From Phallusia mammillata (Eukaryota), in the NCBI GenBank assembly GCA_965637545.1, contig OZ281494.1, positions 16,616,001 through 16,680,000 on the forward strand: a stretch of 64,000 nucleotides of DNA, read 5' to 3'. Shown one piece after another: positions 13,120 through 62,217 of the stretch (the stretch's first letter is position 1; every line of letters begins with the position of its first letter). The notes under the pieces are model-generated. The model had not been told where the DNA came from, made no database searches, and saw only the letters and a list, made by a program, of their open reading frames with translations. Both the position numbers and the translations under genes were made by a program.

Positions 13120-14519
13120 CTACATGTGGTACAAAACGTTGTCCTTTATCTCCGGTCCCGTCTCTACCGACTTGTAAAGTTCGTTGTAAACCATTTCCGT
13201 GACGCCAACTTTGGGGGCTGCTGTTTCCACATTTGGGCCGCGTGGTACATCGTCACGTGCTTCACTGAAGGAAACTGCGTACGTATTTACGTCTTCAGCA
13301 ATTGTGTATACGTCATCAGTGTGTACTTCACCGCTTTCGTAGATGACTACTGAGTCGACTCTGGTTTGGGAAAGCGTCGCAAGCTTTGCACTAAAAACAC
13401 AATAAAATGCTGGGTTATAATTTGTTGAAGGCATACAGCTTTTGACACACCAACGCTTGTTGTGTGCAAATGTAGAACTAAATCTTACCTTTTGCGCATA
13501 CAAAATTTGGTTATCAGACCAGCGGCCAAAAGAATGAGAATGCTTCCAACAACTGCACCGATTATTATTATTATCTTACCGTCGTCTAACTGCTTGATTT
13601 TTGTATTGTTGTTACCTAAACATAAAAACATCAACAGGTTAAAGTCACGTTTATGTTTATCCCAAGCCTAAAAAACCCTACCCGACTGCGTTGATAATTC
13701 CGGAAAAGATGAATTTTGCGTTTCCGCTGAAAAAATAGTTTCGGTGGTGTTCTGGGTAACGTTTAATGTCCAAGTCGTCATTTCTGTCATGTTGAGTGTA
13801 GTTTTTATTACCGAGCTAGTTGTTTCTGTTGCTGCTGTCGATACAGTTGTAGCTAGGCAAAGGAATTTGGATTTTACCAAAAACACAACACAGAAAACAC
13901 GAATCACTTTTTAGTTGGATTTCAATTTGATATGAAAACATACCTGAGCAGTTAAGTACTTCGTATCTTGCCGTCAAAGTATGTTTTGGATTATCAGCAA
14001 CAAACATTAATTGCATTTTTGGCCAACTTTCGACAGGTCGAGTTATGTTGGTACAGCCCTGTACATTGTTTTGTTCGTCACAGGATAATTGTAACGGATC
14101 AGTAAACCGATAGCAGTCGGTAATACTCTTCGTTCTTGCACTCTTTTCTGGAATAAATAAATGAAGAACTCTAGTTTTTAAAGATATGCGTATAAATTGT
14201 TGTTTGTATTGAGGATTAATTTACCATCGGGAAAAGTAATTTGTCCGAATTTGGGGTTTCCGTGTTTGTTACGAATTTGAACGTCTCGGATTGTGAGATA
14301 AGTGCCGCTCGCCATTGTAGTTATCCATATGCAGGATTGATCACATTCACTGAGTAAAAGTTCCCCATTTTGTGCAGTCACTTTTGCCCTTGTCGAATTG
14401 ATAACTAAATTCAAAGTAATGTACTATTTACAAAGCGATTTTGCTAGCTTCTAGCACCGTTTTTAACAATTAAAACACTAACCTGTCAACAGTAAAAGAA
14501 ACATCAATCTCAGTGCCAT
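13120..14519 (-). pseudogene. R8: CUB-like receptor, class A tail, single nonsense codon
   Basis: Signal MALRLMFLLLLT. In-frame TAG at 14424-14426 (..SLCK*YITL..). Second ectodomain exon, Thr stalk, TM IIIIIGAVVGSILILLAAGLI and tail (DVYTIA, MVYNELY, KDNVLYHM*) are all open. Confidence 0.65.
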
Positions 14520-15227: not shown

Positions 15228-16620
15228 TCAACAACCATACAAAATAAATAAAAAAGGGAATATCATTGCCCTTGATAAAGTACATTGTCTTTTATTTCTG
15301 GTAGCTTGACCTCTGCCGATCTGTAGAGTTGGTTTTTAACCATTACTTTTTCGTCTTTAGTTTTGGGATGTGCAGGGTTTTGAGTTGCGTCGAGGTTTCC
15401 ATCTGGTACATACAAACAGTTGACCACCATCCCTGTCTGTTGGTTGGAATCAATATCTTCGTATTGTGCTGGTTTGGAAACATTGACTGCTGCATCATGG
15501 TTGACAGGTCGCTGTCCGCTGTTTGCATACAGTGGCTGATGTGGTATGCGCTTTCTCCTGCTGTGTAAAAAAGGACGTGCGTTTTTTACAGTTAATTTGG
15601 GTAGGGCAAATGCATTGTTTTACGAAAACAAACTACTACTCTTTCTTACCTACTGAAGATGCAAATTGTAGCCACAATAGCAATGAAAAGAATAATGCTT
15701 GCTAACCCAAGCCCCACTGCTAAGCCGGTCGAATCATACTCGTTGGATTCGGTCGTATTATACTGATTAAAATCGGTCGCATTAAACGATTCCGTTGTAC
15801 TCGCGGTGTTCAATGTTTGATGGACCGTGGTTGTATCTAAAAAAATAATGAAAACTGTTGACTTGTGATTTTCTATAATTTGGCACGCATTTTACTACAT
15901 ACTTTTGGCAAAAGATACTTTTAATTAGTCATGATTATGCGATCTCATACCTATAGGTTGTGGGAAGAAGGTATAGTTTGCCCACACAGCGTCGTTGTCG
16001 TCGGAAGACAAAAAGCGAAATTCTATCCGCCCATTGCAATTTGTAAATACTTGACAGTGTCTCGGATGGGACAACGAACAACCGCGTCCATTTTGAAGTA
16101 TATAGCATTCATTTCTAGCATTCCAGTCTATTGTCTTCTGAATGTCTGGAGTTTCCACAACAAAACAACGATAAAAAAGTTTGTGATGTTTTACTACAAA
16201 CGTCCTGGTTAACTTACTTGGTCCACACGCAATATCGAAATGTCCGTTCCTTCTGTTCACAAAGTTGGTTGTCAACGAAGTTAGTTTTATTTCCTCATTA
16301 GGTTGGAGGTTAGTTGACCACTTGCATGTTCCTTTACAGTTGCCACCGCTTTCTGTTATAACCCCACTAGGTTTCACTAATTCGGGTATGGTTAGGGACC
16401 GCATTGAATTGATAAGGCGTTTCAAATATTTATCTGACTACACGTGTTAAGCGGAAAAAATATTTTCTTGTTTTATTCGTAAAACATCAAAAATATTGTT
16501 ATGTGACTTATAAACCCTACCTCAATACCACACAACACCATACTTTCCACACTGTCTAATCTACTGGGCTGTAGTGACTTCCGTGTATTAAAAATAGTGA
16601 TACCGACACTCATCATCATT
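15228..16620 (-). CDS. R9: divergent CUB receptor, class A tail
   Basis: CUB halves ..KPSGVITESGGNCKGTCKW.. and ..IEFRFLSSDDNDAVWANY; stalk/TM exon 15651-15837 (LAVGLGLASIILFIAIVATICIF); tail AQYEDI, VVNCLY, VKNQLY. The signal exon (about 16520-16620) is uncertain. Confidence 0.65.
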
Positions 16621-17085: not shown

Positions 17086-19040
17086 TTACATATGATATAA
17101 AATATTGTCTTTTACTTCCGCGTGCGAACTGACTCCATGGTACAATTGATTATCAACCATCACTGGTTCGTAATCGGTCTGGCCATCAACACCTACATTG
17201 CCACCGGCACCGCCATATTGGTAAATGCTATTGTAAACCATTTCATTTCCGTCGTTTGCGTAGGTTTTAGAAGCGGCCAATACATTATTTGAAGATGGTG
17301 TGTTTTGGCTTTGGTTACTCGCTGTTATATGACAAGCTTCTTCGTAGACGTTTTCGGTCTGAAAATTGTTGTTCGTTGGTGATTCCTTTTGTTTTCTTCT
17401 GCAAATACAAATCCGCATAATGTCACTACACCTTTACGTACTGTGTTTACTTTTAGTGTACAGGAAAAGGTTGCAGAGGGTTGTAATTAAGTATAAACGG
17501 AATGAAAAGTTTAACTTACAAACACAGCCATATTTGTTCCTAAATTATGTTCTGTTTCAGTCAAATGCCAAACCAAGATTTGATAAAGCAATGGTTAAAG
17601 AAAGCTCTTCCAAATCTGCGTGTGAGATTTTTTAGCAGGTCATGATTTCATATTTATCGCCATCGGTACATACAAGCGGAAACGCTATTTTAGGTTTGTG
17701 TACTGGTTAGACGTGAAACTATTGACTGAAAACACGAACTTTTTGTTCTTGTAAAACATAATTGCCACAGCAACGAGTATGAGGAGTAACACGAAGGCAA
17801 CTGCCAATCCCGCTATTAGTCCGACACTTATTGAGTTTCCGAGTAATTTCGCGTCTGTAACAGTTGTATCTAAAAACAACACGTTGGGTTATACCAGTAA
17901 TATAACATAAATCACAAAACTACTGACTGGAAATTTCTGTAGTAATTTCATTGGTCGTATTAAAACGGGTTGAAGAGATCGGTGTAGTACTTCCCGAACT
18001 TGAAGCCGTCGTGGCTTTTAAGGTTGTTGTACTTCTTGTAGGTGCTTAAAATGAAATGAAATCGTTCTTTTTTAATACTGCGCATGACCAGTTACTGATG
18101 GCTTACAAGTTTGTATCGGCGTAGTGGTGGTGGTGGTTGACTGCAGTGTTGTACTGGTTACTTTCTTAGTCGTAGTTGACTTGGAAGTTGTGGTTGTCAC
18201 TTTTGTGGTCGTACTTGGGGTAGCTGCAAAACATGAAGCACGCGTTTGTCTTGAACATGTGCTTTTCGTACTATACATTTTTTACATATTCAATCAATGC
18301 GTAAATCATACTTCTACCTTAATTAGTACTTACGTTTTGCGCAATCGTACACTGTGTATCGAAAAGATAAGTTGTCCTTTTTATTGGTCGGTTTATACGA
18401 CAGCTTTATACTATTCCAGTTTGGGGGACGTTCGATATCCGGATTTGAGCAAAGGTCGGAATTCGGATGATTACACACTTGCTGGTTGTCGTTCACGTAA
18501 ATAGTGCATGCCCCATTCTTTTGAGTTGTGTCGACTACAAAATAGTGTGTTTAAACAATTGTTTTTCGCTGTACATTGTTTGTTCTGGTTGGCTTAAACT
18601 ACTTACGTTCTTACTCAGTTTCATTGCTAACGCGGTAAAATGGCAGGTTAGAATATACGTTCTGACACAGAGTCACACTGAACATTTCAGCTTTTTCTTA
18701 GTCAATGCTTTCCCTAATCTAAGCAATACATTTATTTAACGAAATCACAGTTCTGTTGAAACTCACTGCCAGTTTGTAGCAGCTCATCGTACAACATAAG
18801 TCGACTCCCATGTTTAGGCGACAGTGTCCAAATGCATTCATCATTACAATCTGCAGCAGAGGTTTCAATTTTTCCGTTTCCGGTGACTTCAAGGTGCTCG
18901 TTTTTCGTGCAATATTTACCTTAGTTTACAAAGTTAGTTTTGCACCCTGCCACTAGAGAGTGTGCATAACAGTATTCAAGTCAACTTACGTGTGCACCGA
19001 TAAAACAAATTGCGTCTTGTGCATTCACACGACAGCATGT
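17086..19040 (-). pseudogene. R10: CUB-like receptor with long mucin stalk, class A tail, nonsense codon
   Basis: In-frame TAA at 18921-18923 early in the first ectodomain exon (..FVN*GKYCTKNE..DECIW). There are two Thr-rich stalk exons, TM ISVGLIAGLAVAFVLLLILVAVAIMF, and tail NVYEEA, MVYNSIY, VDNQLY, KDNILYHM*. Confidence 0.6.
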
Positions 19041-22477: not shown

Positions 22478-24003
22478 TCAAGACTTGTCAACTACAGAGT
22501 AGGTAGCTTCATCTTGCGCAAGTTCCACTCCTCTGTGACTTTTTACTGTCCCACGAAAGGTATAAAGAATATTGTCAACCATTCGAGGTTTGTTTACTTC
22601 AGTATAAACGTCACCACTCGATGTTGTTGGGGTTTCTTTAGGAAATACAGGACTCTCTGGTTTTTGTGTTTCACTTGCACTCTCATTCTTTAAGTCATTT
22701 TTGCCAGCCGCTATATTGTATGTTGAGCTGTAAGCGTTTTCCTGGTCCACAGAGGATAGATTTTGATAACGCGAATCAACATAAGCAACTGCAGGTGATT
22801 CGTCAACTCTTGTTGGAGTGTTTTGGAATGGCTTGCGGCGTTGCGTAGTTTTTTGCTTTTTCCACCTGCAGACGTTAATAAACCTTTACATATATTACAA
22901 GATCTAATCAATTATACGAATTCCTACCTAACAAAACATATCACTACCACCACAATAACGAGCAACAAAACTCCGACCGATGCCCCGATTGCTGCAGCGA
23001 GTATCGTGGAATTGTCAGAATATGTTCCAGTCGTGCTTTCACCTGAAAAGGCTTTGTACACCGTTTACGGTAAAATACGTGTTTTATACAAAAGGCCAGG
23101 TTGAGCGAATTTTATTTAAATAAAGACAGTCGTTGGTTGCAAAAATCGAATCTTCATTTGTAAAAAAAACACCAAAAGTAGCTTTACCTGTTGATTTTGT
23201 AGATAACCTGGTCGTGGTGGTTGTTGCGTGAAAAGGTGAATCTAAAATAAGACTTGGTGTGGTATGTGGTAAAAATATAAATTACCTTTACTTTTTTTAA
23301 GTTACCTGTTATGTTCACAATGTAATACTTTAATCCGAATCCGAGTTGGTTTGTATCTTGTCCGTCCGAATAGAAATATACTGTCCATCGTGGTTTACTT
23401 GACCTTAGCAAAGTAGTGTTTGTGCAATTTAGTGCGTCTTTCCATTTGTCCAGTTGTTTACTTGAAATGTTTGTGCCATGAATCACGTAACACTCGCCTC
23501 CTTGCGTCTCTCCGCACAAATTTAATAAATCTGTTTCATTGTGGTCTGCAACATATTCACACATTTCGAATACAGTTTAGATGGTATTTTATTGCACTTA
23601 CCTTCTGTAAACGTTAGATGGTCTACGCATGAGCAATTGTATACGTCTTTGTTTTGACAAAAAAGTTTGTTGTTTCTCTTAATTTGCAAATAGTTGACGT
23701 GTATTATCATTAGTTCGTAAGTTACATCGATAGCAAACTTCCATTTACACGCTTGGTTAACTGGATAAGTTTTATCTGTTCCGTTTTTTTGTGGGGACCT
23801 AATGCTTCCATTCTTTTCTGTTATATATCCGTCTGTTACGTTGCATGTTAGTTGCGTCGCTTTTACATCAGCTGCAAGCACAAGAAATTGCAGTAATTTA
23901 AATGTTTGGAAATTACCCATGATATGAGTTTGCTAATAATAATAAATTTGATTTAACCTTTCTTACCAATGAGAATAGTCACGGCTGTCAATAGAAACAT
24001 CAT
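22478..24003 (-). CDS. R12: 8-Cys CUB receptor (ectodomain type X), class A multi-ITIM tail
   Basis: Signal MMFLLTAVTILI; CUB TCN..NGSIRSP..TYPVNQACKW..DHL / NLCG..YFYSDGQDTNQLGFGLKYY; stalk; TM ILAAAIGASVGVLLLVIVVVVICFV; tail SRYQNL, DVYTEV, VDNILY, ATYSVV. Confidence 0.85.
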
Positions 24004-31016: not shown

Positions 31017-32672
31017 ATGGGTCCCCTTCCCTGAAGGGGACACATATTGATTTTACTCGATTTATTTGTTTTTTTTTTCTTTTTTTCTTTTTTTTTCTTT
31101 TTTTTTTCTTGTTTTTTTTTCTGCCCAAAGTTTGTCCACCTCGTTTTGCCTTGAAATGTTTGATGGATTTGGATGAAATTTTCACAGAAGGTAGATATAG
31201 TTATGTAGATGTGCCATTTGTTTTGTTTGACTCGATAGCCCCAGTGTTTACCCCACTAGCCCCCTAAAATGGGTAAATTTTGAACAATGTCCGAATTGGA
31301 TGAAATTTGAAAAGTTTGTTCATTGTGCCATTTTAGGGCATCGTTTGTTGTGTTTTACACTGTAGCCCCAATATTTACCCCAGTAGACCCCTAAAATGGG
31401 TGATTTTTTTAAACAATGTCCGATTCGGATGAAATTTGGACAGTTTGTTCATTATGCTTTTTTAGGGCGTCGTTTGTTGTGTTTTACACTGTAGCCCCAA
31501 TATTTACCCCAGTAGACCCCTAAAATGGGTGATTTTTTTAAACAATGTCCGATTCGGATGAAATTTGGACAGTTTGTTCATTGTGCTTTTTTAGGGCATC
31601 GTTTGTTGTGTTTTACACTGTAGCCCCAATATTTACCCCAGTAGACCCCTAAAATGGGTGATTTTTTTAAACAATGGCCGATTCGGATGAAATTTGGACA
31701 GTTTCTTCATTATGCCATTTTAGGGCGTCGTTTGTTGTGTTTTACACTGTAGCCCCAATATTTACCCCAGTAGACCCCTAAAATGGGTGATTTTTTTAAA
31801 CAATGTCCGATTTGGATGAACTTTGGACAGTTTGTTCATTATGCTTTTTTAGGGCGTCGTTTGTTGTGTTTTACACTGTAGCCCCAATATTTACCCCAGT
31901 AGACCCCTAAAATGGGTGATTTTTTTAAACAATGTCCGATTCGGATGAAATTTGGACAGTTTGTTCATTGTGCTTTTTTAGGGCATCGTTTGTTGTGTTT
32001 TACACTGTAGCCCCAATATTTACCCCAGTAGACCCCTAAAATGGGTGATTTTTTTAAACAATGGCCGATTCGGATGAAATTTGGACAGTTTCTTCATTAT
32101 GCCATTTTAGGGCGTCGATTATTGTGTTTCACCATGTAGCCCAATATTTACTGCTTAAGCCACCTATTTTTTAAAAAACGTCCGATTTGGATGAATTTTT
32201 GATAGTTTTATGAATTTGGCATTTGTAGCTGTCGAATATTGTGTTTCACCCTGCAGCCCTATTATTTACCCTACCAACCCCCAAAAATGTGTGAATTAAT
32301 CAACAATACATTTTGACAGTTTGTATAATATGCCATTTTGAGATGTCAGTGTTTTATGCTATTTAGGCACACAAACTTATAACAATGTCTCAATTGCATG
32401 AGATTTAGACAGTTTGTACTTTACATAACTTTTTTTTTAGGAACACTACCAATCACTGTGTTTGACTTTATAGCACCGTTTCTTATGGTTGTCTGTTTAC
32501 AACTTTGCGGTTTTGGGGACCCATGAGTTTCTGCCTGCAGAAACAAATCAAGATTATAAAAAATGTTGGCTAATATAGGACCCAATATAAATAAATATAG
32601 AGAATATATTACAGTTTGCAGAATAGGTTGTAGTGTATATGCTATAGTAAAATGTGCTAAGCCACCCTTCTA
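31017..32672 (+). mobile_element. Helentron-associated non-autonomous element (HINE/DINE-1-like) carrying a satellite array
   Basis: Subterminal IR atgggtcccc (31017-31026) / ggggacccat (32515-32524); 5' hairpin gtcccctt-aaggggac; 3' hairpin gtttctg-cagaaac (32527-32544); T-rich microsatellite near the 5' end; insertion into a T-run. The last ~125 bp are of unclear origin. Confidence 0.7.
31261..32160. repeat. 129-bp tandem satellite, about 7 copies plus degenerate flanking units
   Basis: cccctaaaatggg recurs at 31261, 31388, 31517, 31646, 31775, 31904 and 32033 (129-bp period after the first unit). Confidence 0.95.
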
Positions 32673-34120
32673 GTTCCATTTTGTTTGATTCTGTGGACTG
32701 TTTGGTGATCCCAACACAAAGCATGTTGTGTTTTTTGTTTTTCCACACATGTACAGTCGGTTTTCCTGGTCGTCTAAATACATCGTGTCACGAAAAAGAT
32801 GTACAAACATTGTTTTAATAAACTTGGAAACTTACCGCCAAGTATAGTTAGGTAATCTTCGCATTTACAATGGTCCAAACTTCCAATGCAAAACTGATTT
32901 TTCTTATCTTTAACGATTTCCAAATAGGTTATCACAATGATCAAAACTTGCTTATCGGGGCTCATTGGAAATTTCCATGTACACGATTGATTAGCAGGGT
33001 ACGTTTTGTTATAACGAAAGTCAAAGCCAGGTGAGGTAATTGTTCCATATGTGCTGTTACCTACATCTACACTCACATTGCAATTTTGACTGTTTGTTAC
33101 ACCTGAACAAACAAAACAAATTTGCATAAAAACATCCCGATTTTCAATCATAGAAATGCTTACTTGTAAGAAGTCCCATAATCAAGAACCCTTTTAGGTG
33201 AACTTTGTTTTCCGGAACAAAAAGTCTCCAAATTTTGTCCACGATCGTCATAGCTTCTGTGATATTTTTTTGCAATAGCTCGAACAACTAATTCCTGTTA
33301 TTGGTCATTGCTGAATTGCCTCCAAAACTTCAGTAATTATGAGAAGTAGGCGTTTCGGGATGACAGTATTTGCAGCTTCTGCAAATTGTCTAAACTATTT
33401 TTGATTGTAGATATTTCTGTAAACGACTAGGGTCGAACTAATTTAGTCTGTTTAATTTCCCACTATTTTTCGTCACAACTGCTTTTAACCTACTGATAGC
33501 TAACTGCTAAAACATTTATACGGAAATAACGCGTAACTGCAGACAGTTCTGTGTAAGGGTCAACTTCCGAACAATTCATAGAAAGAAAAGCCTTAAAATT
33601 TGCCAAACCGCTTCATGGAAAATGAGTTGGTAAACACATGATTATTCTCCTAATGTCACAGAAAAATTGCTCTGTTGATTTTTTCATGTTGCAACACATC
33701 ACACATTCCAATCTTATGAACCGCTGAATAAAAAGTACGAAGTTAACACAAATCGTTGTGAACAACGAGTGTTTTGTATGTCAAGTAGGACAACATTTTT
33801 TTCTAAATGCAAGAAACATTTGAGAAAAAGTTAATCTCGCGCTTACTTCCTTGGTGATTTATGTCATTACTGTCTTGTGTGGACGTCGCGTGCGAAGATA
33901 CAATTTGATATTAAATTTTGTCACTGAAGAGGACATTTGTGAAGCGATGGCCAGCCGCAATTAAAATAAAACAGTTGAATTGATGATCATGAAAAAATCG
34001 TGCACATATTCATTGCTTGGATTTGCTCTGAATTCCGAATTGTCTGCCCGGTTTGATATCTCACATCTTGTAGTCCTGACATTATTTGAATCAGGCTATT
34101 CGTTTTTGTATCTCGTGTTC

Positions 34121-35800
34121 TCATTTCATTCCCGCGTACAAAACATTGTCCACATGCATACTTTCACTTTCTCCGTACAAAACATTGTCCACATGCATAC
34201 TTTCACTTCCTCCGTACAAAACATTGTCCACATGCATACTTTCACTTCCTCCGTACAAAACATTGTCCACATGCATACTTTCACTTCCTCCGTGCAAAAT
34301 ATTGTCCACTTGCAAACTTTCGCTACCAGTTGCTTCTTGTTGCCCTTGAACTGTGTCGTGTCCGTTCCGGGAATGCGAAACTTCGTGGGGCAGGTCTACT
34401 GTATTTGGCTTGTGTACCACAGCATACATTTCACCATCTCCTTGGGCCAAATCAGACATTACGATGTCGTGCTCTGAAGCCGTTCTGGGCGTTTGTTGCG
34501 GTTCTTTACTTTTGCCTTCTGGCAATGTTCCTACAGTCTTCGTTTTTCTTGCATGCTTTCTTCTGCAAAATGTTAAAGCACAGTGACACGTGTTTTTTAG
34601 GCAACTTGAATGTAAAGTAACAAACGCACCTGAGAATACATATTACAAACACGATAACAGCTATTCCCACAGCGCCTCCAGCCGATGCAATGGCAATTAT
34701 TGTGAGTTGATTGCTGGATGTTTTCTGTGGAATTGACGTTGTAGATTCCGTTAAAGTCAGTTTTTGATCTTCTGATTCTGTGTATAGTTACGTATAAGTT
34801 TGTTACTTGCACTGTGCGGCTTTAACAATACAAGTTTTGTTTGTTTTTACTTCGTATGTAAAACAAGAACACATATAATACTTGGTACTAACCCTCTGAA
34901 GTCGACCGTGAAGTTGTAGCGGCAGGTCCATGCGACGTTGGACGGATATCCGGCTTTAAATCTTATTAGTCGAAACATAATTATTGAGATAGAAACCTTT
35001 TTAAAAATAAGAGAGACAACCTAATGTTTTGTAGAGACACTTACCAGATATGTTAACTCTTTGATAATCCAAACGAAACCCGTCCCCATGAGGTTTTGCG
35101 GAGCTGGAGTAAAACCAAATTGCGTATTGTGTTTTGTTTGTGGTCAACAAAATTGGGAAATCGCAAAATTGTTGTTTTCCCAAATCGATTACAGGAGATT
35201 CTGATTCGATTTTTGGTTTCAACACAAGGCACATTTTGCTCGTCATTTCTCCACACAGGTAAAATTTATTTACCTTGTCATCTTGCGTACCAAAAAATGA
35301 ATTTCAGCATATGCATATAAGTTTATTTTATAGCGATCACTTTCAACCTACCGCTAAGTATGGTGAGATGATCATTGCATTGGCAAGTTGCCAACGTTCC
35401 ATTACAAAAACTTGATCCGTTACTTTTGGCTAGTTTTATATAATTGACCGTAATAAACAGAACTTCATGGTAGATAACTGGAAGCTGCCATTGACACGAT
35501 TGTGCCTGGGATATATTTGAGGGTGAAGAGATCGTTCCTGACATGTTAGAAATCAAACCTGAACTCACATCACAAGGTAGAGTTGAACCTAAAATATAAA
35601 ATGGACAATGAGTGCTTATGTATTCTGGGAGCTTCTAAATATTCAAAATGGCATAAACATCAGCAAAATGTTTACTGCTTCTACATAAAGTAATGTTATG
35701 ACTAACCTTGACTGAGTCCAATGCAACCAGCACAGCATAATACGAGAACTATATAAACCAATGTCCTCTGTTGAGATTCTTTTGAAGTATATCGACACAT
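34121..35800 (-). CDS. R15: 8-Cys CUB receptor, class A tail with amplified VDNVLY motif
   Basis: Signal exon MCRYTSKESQQRTLVYIVLVLCCAGCIGLSQ; CUB halves LPCD..SGTISSP..QSCQW..CQCNDHL / YLCG..WFYSSSAKPHGDGFRLDY; stalk; TM LTIIAIASAGGAVGIAVIVFVICIL; tail EMYAVV plus repeats. All exons are in frame. Confidence 0.85.
34131..34322 (-). repeat. 39-bp coding tandem repeat (about 5 units) encoding GGSESMHVDNVLY
   Basis: gtacaaaacattgtccacatgcatactttcactt recurs every 39 bp. Four units end in Y; the most 5' unit has H. Confidence 0.95.
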
Positions 35801-38800
35801 TCCGTCAGAGACTTTAAACAAACCCAAGAGAAATTCAAAATTGTTCTACAGACTTCTAAATCCCAGTCAGTCAGTTGACACGATTGATCTTCAGTAAGTG
35901 CTGTATTTGTAAACCTTATTTCTGCAACATCCTGGAAACAAACAAAAATAATGTTGCCAGCAACATAGTTCAACTGTTTAAACTCCATATGCCCCTGACT
36001 GACACAAAAAGTGACAAAAATACTCTGGTAAAAAACGTTTCTTGGAACTGACGTCCAGGAAGCCTTGTGCCATGACCGGCCTTGTACATTAGGTTTAAAT
36101 AAACTTACACACATATGAACGTCAGTAAAGTTAAACACAACTAACTCAAGGGTTACGAAACTTATTATTGCACTATATGTTCCATGTCATCGTTTTGAAA
36201 CATAGATTTACATGCAACACGATACGAAAAACGTAGCAGAACGTCACTCATCTCACGCGTGCAGAGGATCAGATCCGCATGTGTGAGTGACGCCAGCGTC
36301 AATGGATATTCATCACGGCACTTCGAAGTTCCTTTACTATTTGTTTACCTTCTATGGCTTTGGTGGGTTGGCCACTTTACCATTTTCGTTTAAGGTTTGG
36401 TGAAAACAAAGTATAGCTCTTTCCATGAGTTTAAACCATGGCGATTACTTTGTTTTGTATTTGTACTTACCCTAGCTTTTTACAATGTTTGTTTTTAACA
36501 TCTTGAATATTTTTTTGTATTTCAAAGTTGTATCCATCTCCAGAATACAGGGTAAGGTTGATGCTGTGTAGTTGGTTCTACACATATTCTGAAAATATGC
36601 TACTTTCGAAGCGCCACACGGAAACTCTGATGCGGTCTAGTCAAATAAAGCATTCTATCATTATAGCTGTTGCGTAGTCTTTCTTGATGTTTCTTCCGTA
36701 AATACCTTAAAAGTCAAACACTGTATCAAGCTTCTGGGTCGTTTAAATCAGCTTTTGTTTCGCAACGTTTTTTTGATAATCGTCTAAAACTCAACTAATT
36801 GTGACAACCTTGGTATGTATTGGGTAAGCGGGAAAAAACCGCACAACAAAAATGATATTTTTTTATATTTTAATACTTTTATGTACCTTTGCCAAATAAT
36901 AAATGTTTGTGGTTGAGGCGAAATACGCAAGTTTATGACTTAAAACAATGTTTATGAGATGAAGAATTTAAAGATGTTACAGGGACAAGCCATGTCAAAA
37001 CACGCTTCATGTGTTTCTTTACTCCCTTTCGATGTATAAAATGTTGTCAACTTGTATTCTTTCGCTTGCAGATTGGGGCAAATTTACTTCATTTGTACCG
37101 ATTTCGGAATACACAAGTGTTTCAATAGTTTTATCTCTTTTCGGTTTATGTACTTCAGCGTATTCCGAGCTGTCGCCTTGCTCAGTATCAGTTGATACAG
37201 TGACAGGTCTTGAAAATGTTGAGGTTTCTTGTTGTGTTTCTACTTTCTTGTTGGTTGAAATTTGTCCTGTTTGTCTCTTTTTTCTTGTAAGCTTACATCT
37301 GCGCAAAATCACAAACGTGTAACATACAGCGTGTATACGACATAGTGGTAAAAACAACAAATGATTAAAGTACCTTAATAATATGACAATTATCACGGCT
37401 AGTGCAGTTATTCCTACTGCACCTGCTGTGGCTGCAGCTATGATGATTACTGTGATTTTTCTGGCATGTTTGCTTGAAGTTGCGGATATAGGTGTCGTTT
37501 CAGTCTGGCTGTCACTTTTGGTCGAATTATAGGTGTTCTTTGATTCTGTATTAGCGAAAGGATGTGTTACTGGTCGTATCATCTTAGTCCAGTATTTACG
37601 GCAACAAATAGGCTTGCGCTATAAATTAAACCGACGCCAAAACGGTTGTTTCTGCCATCGTTGTCAGGTTGTAAACTTGTAATGAATTTTTGATCTTTAA
37701 ATTTAAACAAAAATCTTGTGGGGTAACCTGAGTGTGGTTTAAAAAAAATAGGCATGCAAAATGTATTTCACAGACCCTTCTGACAAGATGACCATGCAGG
37801 AGTGATGGACCGACTGTAAACTTGCTGCAAACTTTTGACAATTAACTTTTAAACATTAATGTACTATTGAGACTGGGATGGAAAGGCAATTGCCAAAAGA
37901 TTGGGGTAAATCTTTACAACTGTTTTCCTAAATAATAAATATACCGATTATGAAGTTTGTGCCAGTATTTGATTGCTTCAATAGGCTTTGCTACATAAAC
38001 AACGCTAGATTAAAAGATAAAAAGCATATGAGAGCACTGCAGAGTGCTTACCTGACTTTGATTTAACAAAATTCAGTCGAAACCCGGCCTGGTTGTTTGT
38101 AGCACTCGAAGAAAACTTGATGTCGTATGTAGATAAATTAGTTTTTAACAGCGATACCGTACTGCACTTAAAATAATTTTTTCGTCTGGTTTGATTCTGT
38201 GAGGTGTTTGGTGATCCCAATACAAAGCATGTTGTCTGTTTTGTTTTTCCACACATGTACATTCGGTTTTCTTGGTCGTCTAAAAACACGTCACAAAAAG
38301 GTGTACAAACATTTTTTTAATAAACTTGGAAACTTACCGCCTAGTATAGTTAGATAATCCTCGCATTCACAATGTTCCGAACTTCCATTGCAAAACTGAT
38401 TTTTCTCATCTTTTACAACTTCGAAATGGGTTATTACAATCATCCTTACCAGGGTTCATCGGAAATTTCCATGTACACGATTGATTGGAGGGGTATGTTT
38501 TGTTATTTAGTAAGTTAAAACCAGGCGAAGTAATTTCTCCATATGTGTCGTTTCTTACCTTCACACTCATATTGCAATTCTTGGCTGTTACACCTGAACA
38601 AACAAAACAAATTTGCGTGAAAACATCCCGATTTTCAGTCATAGAAATGCTTACTTGTAAGAACTACCGTAATCACTAATACTTTCAGGTGAGCTTCGGT
38701 TTCTAGAACGAAATATTTCCACGTTTTGTCAACAACCGTCATTGCTTTAGTGGTTTTTGCTTTTATACTTTCACCTTGTTGGTCACTGCTGAAACGCCAC

Positions 38801-39788
38801 TAAAAACTTAAGTATTTGACAATTATAAAGTTAAGGAAGATAGGTTTTGTTATTTTATCACATTGTCAAAATTATTTCCGATTAAAAATGCTTCTACAAA
38901 CGATTCATATTTGATCTGTTTAACCTCACCATATTTTTCGTTACAACTGCTATTTAACCTACTGATAGCTGACTGCTGGAACATTTATGCGGAAATAACG
39001 TGTAACTGCAGACAGTTCTGTGTAGGGGTCAACTTCCGAACAATTCACAGAAACTTTGGGCATACGTGTGCCAAACCGCTTCATAGAAAGGGGTTGGTAA
39101 ACATGTTTATTCTTCTAATGTCGTAGAAACATAGCTCTGTTTTACAGAAACAAATTTGTTTTGTTGCAAACATCGTAGATTCCACTGCTAAAAATGGTGT
39201 CAAGTCAGCACGGATTGTTGTAAATAACATGAATGTTTTGTATGTCAAGTAGGACAACCTTTTTTCAAATTTCTTTAGTGTTCTTAATGCAAGAAGCGTC
39301 CGAACAAAAGTTAATATCACGCTCACATTCTTCGTGATCTAACTCATTACTGCTGTCTTGTGTCTGCAACACCAAGCACTACTAGCTTTGCATACCTTGC
39401 TTAAATGCTTTGTGGTCGTGTTGGGATTTGAAGGTAATGTCCCAGATAAGTTTTGTAAAACGTGTATTAATACATTTTTTTTCACAGCACGAACCAAAAA
39501 AATAGATATACCGAAACGCATTTGAATCGGAAAATGCAGTACATGAACAAAAACTACAAGTGGTATGATGTATCTAAAAAACAGCTTCGTAATACTTGAT
39601 CACTCCAAGTCCATGTATCCATAGTTTTTTAGGGGTATTGGAGTTTCGTAAACGTCGACTTCTGGCTGTGTTTGCTGCGTAACATTGTTGTTTTGTGGGG
39701 CAGATTGTTCTGTTCCTGACAATGTAACTACGTTTTTGAACTTGTTATTGTTAGCCACAAAATAATTTACCTGGGTTGGATATTACTT
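35277..39788 (+). repeat. Segmental duplication block 1, copy A (copy B at 55882-60751)
   Basis: Colinear near-identity in exons, introns and intergenic DNA, e.g. 36350-37000 vs 57345-58000 and 38750-39500 vs 59680-60480. Confidence 0.9.
37019..38742 (-). pseudogene. R16: type-Y CUB receptor with tandem ITIMs; 8-nt deletion in CUB exon 1
   Basis: Signal exon MTVVDKTWKYFVLETEAHLKVLVITVVLT. The aagttttg present in R23 is missing near 38447, causing a frameshift. TM ITVIIIAAATAGAVGITALAVIIVILL and tail SEYAEV, LVYSEI, VDNILY are open. Confidence 0.7.
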
Positions 39789-55881: not shown

Positions 55882-56340
55882 GTCATCTTCTTATCAAAAA
55901 TGATTTTTAGTGTATGTGTATAGGTTTATAGCAATCACTTATTACCTACCGCTAAGTAGGGTGAGATGGTCAACGCATTGGCAAGTTGCCAACGTTCCAT
56001 TACAAAAACTTGGTCCATTCATTCTGGCTAGTTTTATGCAGTTGACAGTAATAAACAGAACGTCATGGTTGATAACTGGAAACTGCCAGTAACATGATTG
56101 TGCCTGGGATATAGTTACGGGTGAAGAGATCTTTCCTGACATGTTAGAAATCAAACCTGAACTCACATCACAAGGTAGAGTTGAACCTAAACCATAAAAT
56201 TGGACAATGTGTGCCGTCTTAAATATTCTGGGAACTGGTAAATGACAAAGTGTTTACTGCTTCTACATGAAGTAATTTTATGACTTACCTTGACTAAGTC
56301 CAATGCAACCAGCACAGCATAATACGAGAACTATATAAAC
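55882..56340 (-). pseudogene. R15b: 5' fragment of an R15 duplicate (partial signal exon, CUB exon 1, 5 nt of CUB exon 2)
   Basis: Aligns with 35277-35758. The start codon is replaced by the hAT element at 56341, and everything 3' of aag|atgac is missing. Confidence 0.8.
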
Positions 56341-57344
56341 CAGGGATGGGCAAACTTTTCAGTGCAAGGGCCGCATTCAAAAGTTTATAATCTTACCGGG
56401 CCGCATAGTATTTCACCGACGACCAATTGCTTGCTTGTTGTTTTGTTTTAAAACAACTGATGCAAAGAATAAGGTTTGTATCATATATATACCATTTAAA
56501 GTCGCCTAAAATGCTCTGATTAACAATTTCTGACTAGTGCATAAATTTAGCTCAACGGAGCTAACTGTTTATGACGTCATAAACTGTATTGTGACGATTG
56601 CAGTGCCTGTTTTTTCGCATTGTTTGCACGTAATAAGCGGATAAAAAGCCTGGCACATATGGTTACTAGACTGCTAATCTTTTTTTCCAGTCACACGAAA
56701 TCTGTTTTAGCAGTTTAAAAATCAAAATATTTAGCAAAATAGATTGCGGCCGCAGGTTGTGCACCCCTGCGCAAAATTATTACATAGTATATTTTCAGCT
56801 TTATGCAAATACGTTTGTTCATGACTGTACAAACATTGGTTGAAACGCTACAATTGTAATTGTTTCAAAAAAAAACAAGCGTTTGTTGCAACAAAGGCTG
56901 AACCACGTTTTTTGTTAATAAAATCCGAGTGCCAACATTAAACAAAAAGTACTGCAACGACCTAAACATGATCCAAAGTGACCAAAGTTTGGGCGTCAAC
57001 AGTGCAAAGTAGGCTGTTTTTGAAAACGTGAATCGCTTTTACTTTTATCGAACGAAGAAATTGTGTCAAGTGACGATTTGCATAATAACGTGGCAGAAAC
57101 AACAAGCTAAAGCACGTGAAAAGTATCTGTGTTCAGTTCCAAAGTATCGAACGGGTACAGATACTGCATATGGCATTGGTATCGGCAAGTCGCACCCCCG
57201 GTATTTATCGGCAAGTCGCACCCCCGGTAACTCTGCGCCTGTGCTCATAGTACTATTCAGCGTTACTGGGAAACATTTGGCGGGCCGCATAAACTCCTTT
57301 GGCGGGCCGCATGCGGCCCGCGGGCCGTAGTTTGCCCACCCCTG
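56341..57344. mobile_element. Non-autonomous hAT element, 1004 bp, without a matching TSD
   Basis: TIR cagggatgggcaaact / agtttgcccacccctg with gcggcccgcgggccg subterminal motif. The flanks differ (atataaac vs ttctatgg), and about 590 bp present in the paralog (35759-36350) are missing. Confidence 0.9.
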
Positions 57345-58012
57345 TTCTATGGCTTTGGTGGGTTGGTCACTTTACCATTTTCATTTAAGGTTTGGTGAAC
57401 ACAAAGTATCGCTATTGCCATGAGTTTAAACCATGGCGATTACTTTGTTTTGTATTTATACTTACCCTAGTATTTTACAATGTTTGTTTTTAACATCTTG
57501 CATATTTTTTTGTATTTAAAAGTTGTATCCATCTCCAGCATACAGGGTAAGGTTGAGGCTGTAGTTGGTTATACACATATCCTGAAAATATGCTACTTTC
57601 GAAGCGCCACACGGAAACTCTAATGCGGTCTAGTCAAATAAAGCATTCTATCATTATAGCTGTTGCGTAGTGTTTCTTGATGTTTCTTCCGTAGATACCT
57701 TAAAAGTTAAACACTGTATCAAGCTTCTGGGTCGCTTAAATCAGCTATTGTGTCGCAACGTTTTTTTGATAATCGTCTAAAACGCAACTAATTGTGACAA
57801 CCTTGGTATGTATTGGGTAAGCGAAAAAAAAACCGCACAACAAAAATTATATTTTTTTACATTTTAATATTTTTATGTACCTTTGCCAAATAATAAATGT
57901 TTGTGGTTGAGGCGAAATACGCAAGTTTATGACTTAAAACAATGTTTATGAGATGAAGAATTTAAAGATGTTACAGGGACAAGCCATGTCAAAACACACT
58001 TCATGTGTTTCT

Positions 58013-59669
58013 TTACTTCTTTTCCATGTATAGAATGTTGTCAACTTGTATTCTTTCGCTTGCAGATGGGGGCGAATTTTCTTCAGTCTCACCGATTTCG
58101 GAATACACAAGCGTTTCATCTCTTTTCGGTTTATGTATTTCAGCGTATTCCGAACTGTCACCTTGCTCAGTATCAGTTGACACAGTGACGGGCCTAGAAA
58201 ACGTCGAGGTTTCTTGTTGTGTTTCTACTTTCTTGTTGCTTGGAATTTGACCTGTTTGTCTCTTTTTTCTTGTGTGCTTACATCTGCACAAATTTGAAAA
58301 CGTGTAACATAGTGTACGACATAGTGGCAAGAAGTAAAAGACAACAAATGATTAAAGTACCTTAATAACATGATAATTATCACGACAAGCGCAGTTATTC
58401 CTACTGCAGCTGTGATGATTACGGTGATTTTTCTCGCATGTTTGCTAGAAGTTGCGGACATAGGTGTCGTTTCAGTCTGGCTGTCACTTTTGGTCGAATT
58501 ATAGGTGTACTTTGATGCTGCATTAGCGAAAGGATGTGTTACTGGTCGTATCATCTTAGTCCCGTATTTACGGCAACAAATAGGCCTGCGTTATAAATTA
58601 AACCAACGCCAAAGCGGTTGTTTAATGCTATTAAACAAAAAACCTTTTGGGTAACCTGGGTGTGAGTATTAAAAAATAGGTATGCAAAATGTATGACTTT
58701 ACAGAAATGATCAACCGACTGTAAACTTGATTTAAACTTTTGACAATTGAATTTTAAATATCGCCTGTACTTTTGAGAGTAGGATGGAAAGGCAACTGTC
58801 AAAAGATTAGGGTAAATATTTACAACCCTTTCCTAAATAATAAATACACTAATACTAAAATTTGTGCCAGTATTTAATTGATTTAATAGGCTTGGCCACC
58901 TAAAAAAACACGAGAATAAAAAAATAAAAAAAAGCATATAAGAATTACACTGCGGAATGCTTACCTGACTTTAATTTGAAATAATTCAGTTCAAATCCTG
59001 GTTGGTTGTTTGTAGCACTCGACAAAAACTTGATGTCATATGTAGATAAATTGGTTTTTAACAGCGATACCGTACTGCACTTATATTTATTTTTTCGTTT
59101 GGTTTGATTATGTGGGGTGTTTGGTGATCCCAATACAAAGCATATTTTGTTTTTTGTTTTCCCACACATGTACAGTCGGTTTTCTTTGTCGTCTAGAAAC
59201 ATAGCGTCTCACAAAAGGTGCACAAGTATCTTTTAATAATGTGGGAAACGTACCTCCTAGTATAGTAAAGTAATCTTCGCATTTACAAAAATTCAAACTT
59301 CCATTGCAAAACTGATTTTTCTCATCTTTTACAACTTCGAAATGGGTTATTACAATCATCAAAACTTCCTTATCAGGGTTCATCGGAAATTTCCATGTAC
59401 ACGATTGATTGGCAGGGTATGTCTTGTTTTCAAGTGCGTTAAAACCAGGTGAAGTAATTCGTCCATGTATGTTGTTTTCTACCTTCGCACTCACATTGCA
59501 ATTCTGACTGTTTGTTACACCTGAACAAACAAAACAAATTTGCGTGAAAACATCCCGATTTTCAGTCATAGAAACGCTTACTTGTAAGAACTACCATAAT
59601 CACTAATACTTTCAGGTGAGCTTTGTTTTCTCGAACGAAAAGTTTCCACGTTTTGTCAACAACCGTCAT
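58013..59669 (-). CDS. R23: duplicate of R16 with intact CUB exons and tandem-ITIM tail
   Basis: CUB exons are open (..MNPDKEVLMIVITHFEVV..). The TM is 5 aa shorter than in R16; tail SEYAEI, LVYSEI, VDNILY. The first stalk exon is partly deleted, so the reading frame across the stalk is uncertain. Confidence 0.65.
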
Positions 59670-60562
59670 TGCTTTAGTGGTCTTTGTTTTTGCTTTTATA
59701 CTTTCACCTTGTTGCTCACTGCTGAAACGCCGCTAAAAACAAGTATTTGACAATTATAAAGTTAAGGAAGACAAGTTTTGTAGTTTCATCACATTGTCAA
59801 AATTATTTCCGATTAGAGATGTTTCTACAAACGATTCATATTTAATCTGTTTAACCTCACCGTATTTTTCGTTACAACTGCTATTTAACCTACTGATAGC
59901 TGACTGCTGGAACATTTATGCGGAAACAGTGTGTAACTGCAGACAGTTCTGTGTAGGGTCAACTTCCGAACAATTCATTGAAATTTTGGACATAAGTTTG
60001 CCAAACCGCTTCATGGAAAGGGGTTGGTAAACATGTTTATTCTTCTAATGTCGTAGGAACATAGCTCTGTTTTACAGAAACAAATTTGTTTTGTTGCAAA
60101 CATCGTAGATTCCACTGCTAAAAATGGTGTCAAGTCAGCACGGATTGTTGTAAATAACATGAATGTTTTGTATGTCAAGTAGGGCAACCCTTTTTCAATT
60201 TTCCTCATTGTTATTAATGCAAGAAGCTTCTGAACAAAAGTTAATCTCACGATCACATTCTTCGTGATCTAACTCATTACTGCTGTCTTGTGTCTGCAAT
60301 ACCAATACACGCTGCTAACATGATACTGTTGGGTTACTGCTAACTTTGCATACCTTGCTTAAAATGCTTTGTGGTCGTGTAAGGATTTAAAGATAAAGTC
60401 CTTTATTAGTTTTGTAAAACGTGTATTGTAATACAATTTTTTTCACAGCACGAACCAAAACATAAATACACCGAAACGCATTTAAATCGAAAAATGCAGT
60501 ACATGAACAAAAACTACAAGTGGTACGATGTACCTAAAAAAAAACAGCTTTATAATACTTGA

Positions 60563-62217
60563 TCACTCCAAGTCCATGTATCCATAGTTTTTTAGGGGTA
60601 TTGGAATTTCGTAATCGCCGACTTTAGGCAATGTTTGCTGCGTAACATTGTTCTTTTGCGTGGCGGGTTGTTCGGTTCCTGACAATGTAACAACGTTTTT
60701 GAACTTGTTATTGTTAGCCACAAAATAATTTACCTGGGTTGGATATTACTTTTATAGTTATAGTTATATTTAAACTAAAATGGTTTAGTGTTGTTAGTTG
60801 CGTTGTCAGTTAAAACTTCGTTGTTTTTTAGCCAAACACAGTGATTTTTGGATGCACAATTTATTGCCAACATAGTTTGATCATAGGACGAAATTAATTT
60901 GCTTTTTTGTACCTACGTCGTTTTGTTCGTGCTGGCTTGTCGTTGCCCCTAAAACAGAATAACATGAACAAAAGTTGTACTAGATAAAATATTATTAGCT
61001 CCGACTTCCAAAAGTATATTTATTACATATTAGCAATCAATGCTGCAGCCTCGAAATTACGTTTTAAAATTAGGTGACTTACCTTATCATGCAACACACT
61101 AATATTACGATGGCTGCAATCGCCACTAATCCTCCCGCAACGATTCCAATTATTGCTTCCGTTCGTAATGAAGTTGCTTCTGGATTGGGAGCCAGCACTG
61201 AAACACACAAACATCACTTTGTTCTCATGACCGTTGTGTGCGTATTGAGTAATGTGGTTAGTGCAATATGAACTATTTTGTTGAATAAGGAGGAAGTAAA
61301 GAAGCGCTTTTTAAGAAGTTGGGGGTTTGATTGCTGTTTGCGAGCAAGTTTTGGCATGATAAACTTTCGACTTAGTGACTATAATATAAATCTGTCACAA
61401 TGGAAACTCGTGCATTTTGTGAAAAAAAAAACAAATAAAAAAACGCTTACCAGGACAGTCGGTCAAAGTGTAGTTCATTTTTAACACGACACCAGCCGGA
61501 GCGTTGGAGTAAATTGCTAGTGTGAACCAAGGATAATTTCCACTAAAGTTTTTCACGTTCATCCCCGGCAAGTGGCAAATACTGTTTGTGGATTGAAGGA
61601 CAAAGCACTCGGTGTTGTTTATGCTCATAGGCCCCATGTATGTCATTCTTTCAAACAAATGTATATTCTTTATACTGTAGTTTTTAAATTTAAAATTCAA
61701 CATTATTATGTTTAACGTAAAAACATTCTTTGTTTATATTGTTACTACGTAACTTCGATTTGAAAATAATAATCCTTAATCAATGACTCAACTACCAGCA
61801 CCTTTTAAAGTAATATTACAAAAATACAACTGTTACGGATAAGTTGTATACTCAAATATAATAATCAAACTTCAGGAAACTGACAAAATAAAGCCAGAAA
61901 ACCAACCTGATGGGAACTGAATTTTTGTGTTCTCATTTAGCAGTTCAATTTTGCCGATGAACACTAACTTAACGGACGGAAATGGGATATCTTGTATTCT
62001 AGTTAAGTTATATTGAGCATTGGTGTAGCTATACTCTTGGTCAAGGTTAAAGTCGCCGCATTGAAGTTGGGCTTGAGTTGTTCTTTGAAATAGAACCACT
62101 ACACATAGAAATAGTTAGTATGTTAATTACACTGCAGAGTTTACCTCATTTGCTTGATTACTTACCTTCTGCGATAAGAAGATAAAACTTGAGTGATTTA
62201 ATGTAACAGAAATTCAT
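60563..62217 (-). CDS. R24: chimera of R21-type ectodomain/TM with the R17-type terminal tail exon
   Basis: Exons 62166-62217, 61907-62098, about 61451-61648, 61081-61195 and 60917-60948 copy R21. The next downstream exon, 60563-60678, copies R17 and is in phase 1. The acceptor of the third exon has changed from aag to aaa, so function is uncertain. Confidence 0.6.

Follow-up and report, generated by a model that had tools for sequence, protein, structure and literature searches.

A young in-frame minisatellite repeats a family tyrosine motif in the cytoplasmic tail of a predicted CUB-like receptor of Phallusia mammillata

The last coding exon of a receptor gene of Phallusia mammillata, here called R15, contains a 39-bp minisatellite that repeats a tyrosine motif in frame. 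The gene lies within a 64,000-nucleotide stretch of contig OZ281494.1 (positions 16,616,001 to 16,680,000 of assembly GCA_965637545.1), which we refer to as the window. The array is a real and recent coding minisatellite, and the receptor gene that carries it is intact. Comparison of the tails encoded in the window indicates that the array multiplies the best-conserved tail element of the family. We give about even chances to the explanation that a recent in-frame expansion of 39 bp in this gene amplified a PTB-type motif of the family and thereby raised the number or occupancy of bound adaptors. Of this explanation, the repeat and its reading frame are directly established, as are the gene model and the motif with its pattern of conservation across the family.

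The R15 gene model consists of five exons on the minus strand, 1158 nt in all, which are listed together with other features of the tail in Table 1. A script check found 385 codons with no internal stop, and GT-AG borders in every intron. The encoded protein has the layout of a type I receptor, with a signal peptide, one membrane span and, beyond it, a cytoplasmic tail; between leader and span lie one predicted CUB-like domain and a stalk. The leader and the span were recognized by eye. The span is a run of 25 hydrophobic residues (34632–34706) and is followed by the residues R-R-K-H-A-R-K. Paralogues of exon 3 were found by tblastn at 23304, 27685, 38068 and 58981. The acceptor TTTTGCAG stands 5' of exon 5 and provides an in-frame join to exon 4. 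The intron between span and tail splits an arginine codon after its second base (phase 2), and both its position and its phase are common to R12, R16 and R16'. It follows from the conservation of this intron that exon 5 of R15 is the regular last exon of the family. An exact look-up of the ATG-started open reading frame of the R15 tail returned no record. A preliminary description of this DNA had held that a tail motif conserved in the family is multiplied here in frame, and this was correct; the exon concerned is cytoplasmic, and the gene that it closes is intact.

Table 1. Exons of R15, units of the tandem array and tyrosine-motif positions in the tail (numbering of the window)
Feature	Position	Strand	Description and basis
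R15 exon 1	35707-35800	minus	ATG and hydrophobic signal peptide, phase-1 donor; read from sequence
R15 exon 2	35352-35588	minus	N-terminal half of CUB-like domain; profile of six paralogous exons
R15 exon 3	35045-35281	minus	C-terminal half of CUB-like domain; tblastn paralogues; AG/GT borders
R15 exon 4	34630-34777	minus	Ser/Thr-rich stalk and membrane span; ends in split Arg codon
R15 exon 5	34121-34562	minus	cytoplasmic tail, about 146-147 residues, and stop
EMYAVV	34415-34432	minus	(D/E)xYAxV-type membrane-proximal motif kept in R15; aligns with SEYAEV (R16, R16') and DVYTEV (R12)
EVSHSRN	34364-34384	minus	decayed match to the ITIM-like LVYSEI of R16, Tyr to His; alignment
U0, older unit	34283-34321	minus	ESLQVDNILH and GGS; tyrosine lost (CAC, not TAC); unit alignment
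U1-U3	34166-34282	minus	ESMHVDNVLY and linker; sole difference is one G-to-A in the U3 linker (GGS to GES)
U4	34127-34165	minus	ESMHVDNVLY, then AGM, K and stop; Tyr 4 residues from the C-terminus

The nature of the ectodomain was examined at the level of the family. A profile built from six paralogous first-half exons was compared with the sequences in the PDB and matched cubilin best (5.4e-6), as well as neuropilin-2 (2.5e-4) and MASP. Four of the six paralogous exons match the Pfam CUB family, the best at 3e-5, and the R14 exon reaches 20.9 bits, just below the cut-off of 21.4. Exon 2 of R15, which has a deletion of seven residues, gives no Pfam hit when searched alone. Profile and Pfam matches taken together, the ectodomain of the family is predicted to be CUB-like.

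TRF identifies a single tandem array at 34124–34321, with a period of 39, 5.1 copies, 94% matches and no indels. Its coding strand is the minus strand, on which the frame is open through the array as far as the stop codon at 34121–34123, and this is the sole frame that joins the upstream exon. In this frame the array is translated as TGSESLQVDNILH, then GGSESMHVDNVLY three times, then GESESMHVDNVLY, then AGMK and the stop; that is, one older unit ending in VDNILH precedes four units ending in VDNVLY. Both the array found by TRF and its translation on the minus strand agree with the earlier claim of a 39-bp in-frame repeat that gives R15 four VDNVLY motifs. A core of 30 nt is present in four exact copies at intervals of 39 nt. 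The window contains no further copy, and the number of matches expected by chance is 0 (100 shuffles). With head-to-tail units in the range of 10–100 bp, a period divisible by three and a reading frame that is kept, the array is a coding minisatellite. On the opposite strand there is an antisense open reading frame of 165 codons (33980–34477, plus strand), which was set aside because the paralogue-conserved splice sites and the homologous tail are found in the minus frame alone.

The units fall into two age classes. The four younger units differ from each other only by a single linker G-to-A and by the junction between the last unit and the C-terminus, and this near-identity implies that their expansion was recent. 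The preliminary description had given the unit as a fourfold repeat; the number of VDNVLY units stands, of which three are exact with GGS and one has GES. It had also noted a Y-to-H unit, which is indeed present and is both the first and the oldest, with CAC instead of TAC. This older unit differs from U1 at four positions, every one of which changes an amino acid. When aligned with the homologous segments of R16 and R16', it shares the Q and I codons with them, and the tails of R15 and R16 are 38% identical over 89 residues (tblastn E 2e-10), so the proposed relationship of the unit to the single motif of R16 is well founded. The array appears from these differences to have been built in at least two rounds, namely an older duplication and a later, very recent multiplication.

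The window is itself a tandem array of paralogous receptors. The segment that contains R16 (36350–39788) is duplicated at 57345–60751 with 87% identity, and a copy of the leader and first CUB exon of R15, called R15', lies at 55882–56342 with 83% identity. No counterpart of the second CUB exon, the membrane span or the tail was found for R15', which is probably a relic. The tails of R16 and R16' differ with a pN of 0.062 and a pS of 0.23 and have both retained all three tyrosine motifs, a pattern that fits purifying selection on this class of tail.

A search of all open tail frames in the window for N-x-[L/I/M]-Y found 23 sites (one with His for Tyr) in 12 tails, with one to three per tail outside R15. 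The stricter pattern VDN[IV]LY occurs outside R15 only once each in three other tails. The statement that the motif is present one to three times in other tails is thus true of the loose pattern but not of the strict one. Counting positions from the tyrosine of the 22 distinct sites, V is found at −5 in 18, D at −4 in 13, M or I at −6 in 12 and L at −1 in 19, and position −2 is V or I in 14 sites and P in none; from +1 to +7 the family sites have no residue preference. All four young units of R15 read N-V-L-Y, with N at −3 and Y at 0, and the older unit reads N-I-L-H, its tyrosine having been lost. When the R15 repeat is collapsed to one unit and R16' is dropped, there are 18 sites against an expected 0.94, and the maximum in 20000 residue shuffles is 6; this enrichment has to be read with the caveats that the tails were chosen for carrying the motif and that they are paralogues. 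The 12 tails are otherwise hard to align, and most have no significant similarity to the R15 tail. The last motif tyrosine lies 2–5 residues before the end of the protein in 7 of the 12 tails, with only two residues following it in two tails and three in a third. The tails at 13123, 15266 and 17089 have two or three motifs, of which the last two are 15–16 residues apart. Multiple motifs at close spacing are therefore a pre-existing design of the family, which the 13-residue spacing of R15 exaggerates.

The pattern of conservation suggests what kind of domain might read the motif. SH2 domains read the residues after a phosphotyrosine, and PTB domains those before it, namely N at −3 and, near −5, a hydrophobic residue. 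Because conservation is restricted to the upstream side and the C-terminal remainder is short, a PTB-type reader is likelier than an SH2, ITIM or ITAM partner, and the motif would be best described as a PTB-type (NPxY-like) docking or sorting site. The canonical NPxY proline at −2 is absent, which places the motif in the relaxed NxxY class at most. Several known patterns resemble the V-D-N-V-L-Y-G of R15: the context of RET Y1062 is I-E-N-K-L-Y-G, the optimum for Dok PTB domains is Y/M-x-x-N-x-L-pY, the LDL-receptor signal is F-D-N-P-V-Y, and a context suited to Src-family kinases has L at −1 and G at +1. PTB domains of the Dok family bind directly to RET Y1062, which is a consensus site for such domains (PMC2150770), and the typical PTB ligand, NPxY, can be bound whether or not it is phosphorylated (PMC2901200). 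Two mechanisms would be compatible with such a site, namely phosphotyrosine docking of Dok/Shc-type adaptors and phosphorylation-independent sorting by Dab/ARH/GULP-type adaptors; a cubilin-like ectodomain would suit the second. The adaptor docking that had originally been proposed can in this way be narrowed to an N-x-x-Y site of the PTB type, as opposed to an SH2 site, and the same site might equally serve phosphorylation-independent endocytic sorting.

Two other readings of the tyrosines were weighed against this one. The tyrosines could be SH2 docking sites that are read C-terminally (YGGS, YGES, and YAGM as a possible YxxM), or they could form ITIM- or ITAM-like pairs. V or I at −2 does resemble half an ITIM, YAGM in the last unit fits YxxM, and the regular 13-residue spacing is superficially like that of an ITAM, but the four units have S, S, S and M at +3, a position that is unconserved across the family, and the two or three residues that follow the tyrosine in the three tails mentioned above fall short of what an SH2 site usually needs. 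The ITIM definition ([S/I/V/L]-x-Y-x-x-[I/V/L]) agrees with the R15 units at −2, where they have V, but not at +3. The LVYSEI of R16 does conform to it, and its counterpart in R15 reads VSHSRN. An ITAM consists of two Y-x-x-[L/I] sites 6–12 residues apart; the R15 spacing is 13, and no unit has L or I at +3. We consider a C-terminally read SH2 site or an ITIM/ITAM pair to be very unlikely. A better candidate, though still an unlikely one, is an FxNPxY-like signal (LDL-receptor/CED-1 type) that directs endocytic or phagocytic sorting independently of phosphorylation, in which case more copies would speed internalisation rather than signalling. The layout hydrophobic-D-N-x-x-Y is that of the LDL-receptor signal, conservation is confined to the N-terminal side of the tyrosine, receptors for endocytosis and scavenging, cubilin among them, typically have CUB ectodomains, and PTB domains are able to bind NPxY without phosphate (PMC2901200). 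The absence of the proline speaks against such a signal, as do the ITIM-like and (D/E)xYAxV motifs in the tails, which point to phosphotyrosine signalling.

For the origin and effect of the array we propose the following course of events. Replication slippage or unequal exchange would have expanded a 39-bp (13-codon) unit in the last coding exon of R15. This unit carries what appears to be the signature motif of the family, roughly [M/I/hydrophobic]-V-D-N-x-L-Y, which normally lies 2–5 residues from the C-terminus. An ancestral single copy, as in R16, may first have been duplicated, after which the older copy would have lost its tyrosine by the change of Y to H and the younger copy would very recently have been multiplied to four. 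Compared with the tail of R16, that of R15 has lost the ITIM-like tyrosine and then rebuilt tyrosines through the repeat. The most likely reader of the motif is a PTB-type domain that recognizes the residues N-terminal to the tyrosine; the motif would then be a proline-less NPxY-like site, either phosphorylated, for docking of the Dok/Shc/IRS/FRS-like kind, or unphosphorylated, for sorting of the Dab/ARH/GULP/Numb-like kind. Four copies, 13 residues apart, may then raise the number or occupancy of bound adaptors. Translation of the repeat, its phosphorylation, its reading by a PTB domain and its effect on dosage are what we infer here, and a tuning of valency by variation in the number of R15 repeats is plausible.

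It is also possible, if on the whole improbable, that the minisatellite is neutral or degenerative, R15 being a fast-evolving or decaying paralogue and the repeat a by-product of slippage that has no effect on signalling. Two other tyrosines of the tail have been lost by Y-to-H changes (in the oldest unit of the array and at the counterpart of the ITIM-like site that R16 has kept), and the CUB exon compared with the truncated R15' has a pN/pS of about 0.84; these losses and this ratio fit relaxed constraint. No RNA run was found that contains the gene, and the same-species RNA runs that were listed have practically none of its words, which falls short of proving it silent. No AATAAA is present within 660 nt past the stop codon. 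The array is moreover very young, so that selection has had little time to act, and its in-frame period is weak evidence, since a third of minisatellites would have a period divisible by three by chance and a change of frame so near the C-terminus would cost little. Against this stand the intact gene model, with canonical splice sites and an uninterrupted frame of 385 codons, the fact that the amplified piece is exactly the most conserved tail element of the family, and the recurrence of multi-copy motifs in other tails. A 3-bp insertion after 34346, which accounts for about half of the depth in three animals, keeps the frame and gives a weak hint that the frame has been maintained. There is much less to be said for the idea that the copy number is an artefact of assembly, with the repeat expanded or collapsed. 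Short-read contigs cannot span the array: in four animals (four DNA runs from three studies) the contigs end at 34152 or 34164 and restart at 34264, and none crosses it. However, contigs from all four animals run into the array from either flank without a single difference, and the units carry distinguishing substitutions whose order is consistent. In run X1 the word depth is 43.2 in the repeat and 9.2 in the flank, a ratio of about 4.7, which is compatible with four to five units, with the reservations that depth is not copy number and that the other runs give lower ratios. An assembly artefact is accordingly the most improbable of the explanations considered here.

The same runs contain a second sequence form just downstream of the array, with 15 differences in 198 nt (33955–34152). 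The two forms could be alleles, or one could come from a paralogue. The divergence between them is much greater than that among the repeat units; should they be alleles, the latest expansion would be younger than both, and haplotypes would be expected to differ in copy number.

A more far-reaching proposal combines the family motif with such variation. In this proposal [M/I]-V-D-N-x-L-Y, placed 2–5 residues from the C-terminus, is the putative site at which a dedicated PTB-type adaptor (Dok/Shc-like or GULP/kindlin-like) docks, in an ascidian signalling module that has so far escaped description, and the R15 minisatellite is a segregating valency series of, for example, 1 to 4+ sites. We regard this as speculative and, as a whole, quite unlikely. 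Were the reading as PTB adaptor and allelic series true, the dose-response of signalling would be directly testable in wild animals, and natural alleles could form a valency series if the array is polymorphic in length. The preferred explanation, that of a recent in-frame expansion of a PTB-type motif, would mean that this locus shows receptor tails gaining docking sites by way of one slippage-prone 39-bp unit, from one to four in very few steps, and that the gain of sites in R15 coincided with the loss of older inhibitory-type tyrosines in the same tail. If R15 is silent, the array is only an ordinary coding minisatellite. The C-terminal V-D-N-x-L-Y common to the family is in our view a more useful result than the repeat, and offers a concrete and cheap bait for the adaptor of these lineage-specific ascidian receptors.

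Coding repeats that alter the number of a binding module are known from other systems. DRD4 has a 48-bp repeat in its third cytoplasmic loop whose module binds SH3 domains, GP1BA has a 39-bp repeat that is extracellular, and the bacterial effector CagA of Helicobacter has repeats of its EPIYA segments. Copy number in all three is polymorphic and alters the strength of binding. The R15 array is comparable to these in that tandem repetition in frame alters how many copies of a short, putative protein-binding module the protein has; polymorphism and function are documented for DRD4, GP1BA and CagA, whereas the R15 repeat is known here from its sequence.

Functionally, the closest analogues of the motif are the NPxY/NxxY ligands of PTB domains, such as RET Y1062, the NPQY of Trk, the FxNPxY of the LDL receptor and the membrane-distal NxxY of integrin beta. 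Like these, the R15 motif combines Asn at −3 with Tyr at 0 and is hydrophobic at −5 and acidic at −4; its specificity would lie solely on the N-terminal side, and like many of them it is cytoplasmic and near the C-terminus. Unlike the NPxY ligands it has V or I at −2 and not Pro, belongs to a predicted CUB-type receptor with no kinase domain, and is arranged as a perfect tandem repeat.

The closest biological context is provided by the fester co-receptors (FcoR) of Botryllus, to which we liken the present family by description only. According to the accessible part of their description, these are clustered type I receptors of an ascidian, which are encoded in tandem multigene clusters and change in copy number, and their tails carry ITIM, hemITAM and [A/D]VYxxV "core-2" motifs, with alleles and paralogues differing in the tyrosine motifs that they have kept (PMC12582321). 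Core-2 as given there is comparable to the DVYTEV, SEYAEV and EMYAVV of the present family. The ectodomains reported in the same part for FcoR are of the Ig and Sushi types, whereas the ectodomain exons of the R15 family match CUB and neither Ig nor Sushi. An N-x-L-Y motif and a tail built by a minisatellite do not feature in this part of the FcoR description (PMC12582321). A literature search found no paper on ascidian CUB receptors with an ITIM, and a limited search found no earlier case of a host receptor in which an NxxY site has been multiplied by a young minisatellite.

Relatives of the tails were sought by several routes. An exact 30-mer of the unit has no match in JGI metagenome contigs. 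The 199-residue open frame of R16, which comprises stalk, span, read-through intron and tail, was used for a word search that returned nothing in the range of 109–348 residues. An exhaustive phmmer search with the R15 tail against 1.84 billion representative proteins gave 19 hits, of which 8 were inspected; these match only through tandem repeats within their own sequences, such as GGSVWIGVDSVIA or GDQTLYGGQMTFN, and were rejected as relatives and attributed to chance. These protein searches found no relative of the R15 or R16 tail outside this genome. The two tails score only 35–39 bits against each other, which is near the listing threshold of the large protein search, so the lack of hits says little about distant relatives. 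One of the inspected hits, a 146-residue metagenome ORF whose remainder has no match in the window, contains [K/R]SKTFHVDNV[I/M]Y four times, with the same period of 13 residues.

Compared with its paralogue R16, the tail of the receptor R15 shows two separate replacements of tyrosine by histidine, one of which destroys an ITIM-like motif that R16 has in the form LVYSEI, and the other the tyrosine of the oldest unit of the 39-bp repeat, as listed in the table. Elsewhere in the family, three tails have a common architecture: a first motif M-V-x-N-x-[L/I]-Y is followed 15–16 residues on by a second, [I/V]-K-D-N-[V/I]-L-Y, and the stop comes only 2–3 residues (HM or QGQ) after the second motif.

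Coordinates of R15 tail features, R15' and the related tails
Feature	Window position	Strand	Description
Tyr-to-His, R15 tail	34364-34384	minus	LVYSEI (R16 form) destroyed
Tyr-to-His, R15 tail	34292-34309	minus	tyrosine of oldest repeat unit destroyed
Second form, differences	33955-34152		downstream of R15 stop; 15 in 198 nt
Second form, TGG insertion (3 bp)	after 34346		within R15 tail exon
R15'	55882-56342	minus	83% identical to R15 leader and first CUB exon
Tails of common architecture	13123-13575, 15266-15619, 17089-17433	minus	three tails

A repeat similar to that of R15 occurs in protein P0004, a 146-residue ORF on a 12.3-kb contig of the ENA metagenome assembly ERZ26222911. It contains four [K/R]SKTFHVDNV[I/M]Y repeats with the same 13-residue period as the R15 array, to which it is 58% identical, followed by what look like frame-shifted copies. 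Outside its repeats, P0004 has no match to the window.

Three of the four animals show, at about equal depth, a second form of the sequence in and just downstream of the R15 tail exon; this form could be an unplaced paralogue or else an allele that has diverged strongly. Within the window, the partial copy R15' is 98% identical to R15 in the leader part and 81–86% identical in the introns. Because neither the second CUB exon nor the membrane span nor the tail has a matching copy downstream of it, R15' is probably a truncated relic of an old segmental duplication.

A plus-strand ORF of 165 codons (33980-34477) crosses the R15 repeat in antisense, where the units read VQNIVHMHTFT. Neither splice sites nor paralogues lend this ORF support, and it was set aside as a by-product of the repeat. 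Between the receptor genes lies a 129-bp satellite (31217-32151, extending to about 32297) of 7.3 copies with 93% matches, adjoined by a T-rich low-complexity run (31061-31122).
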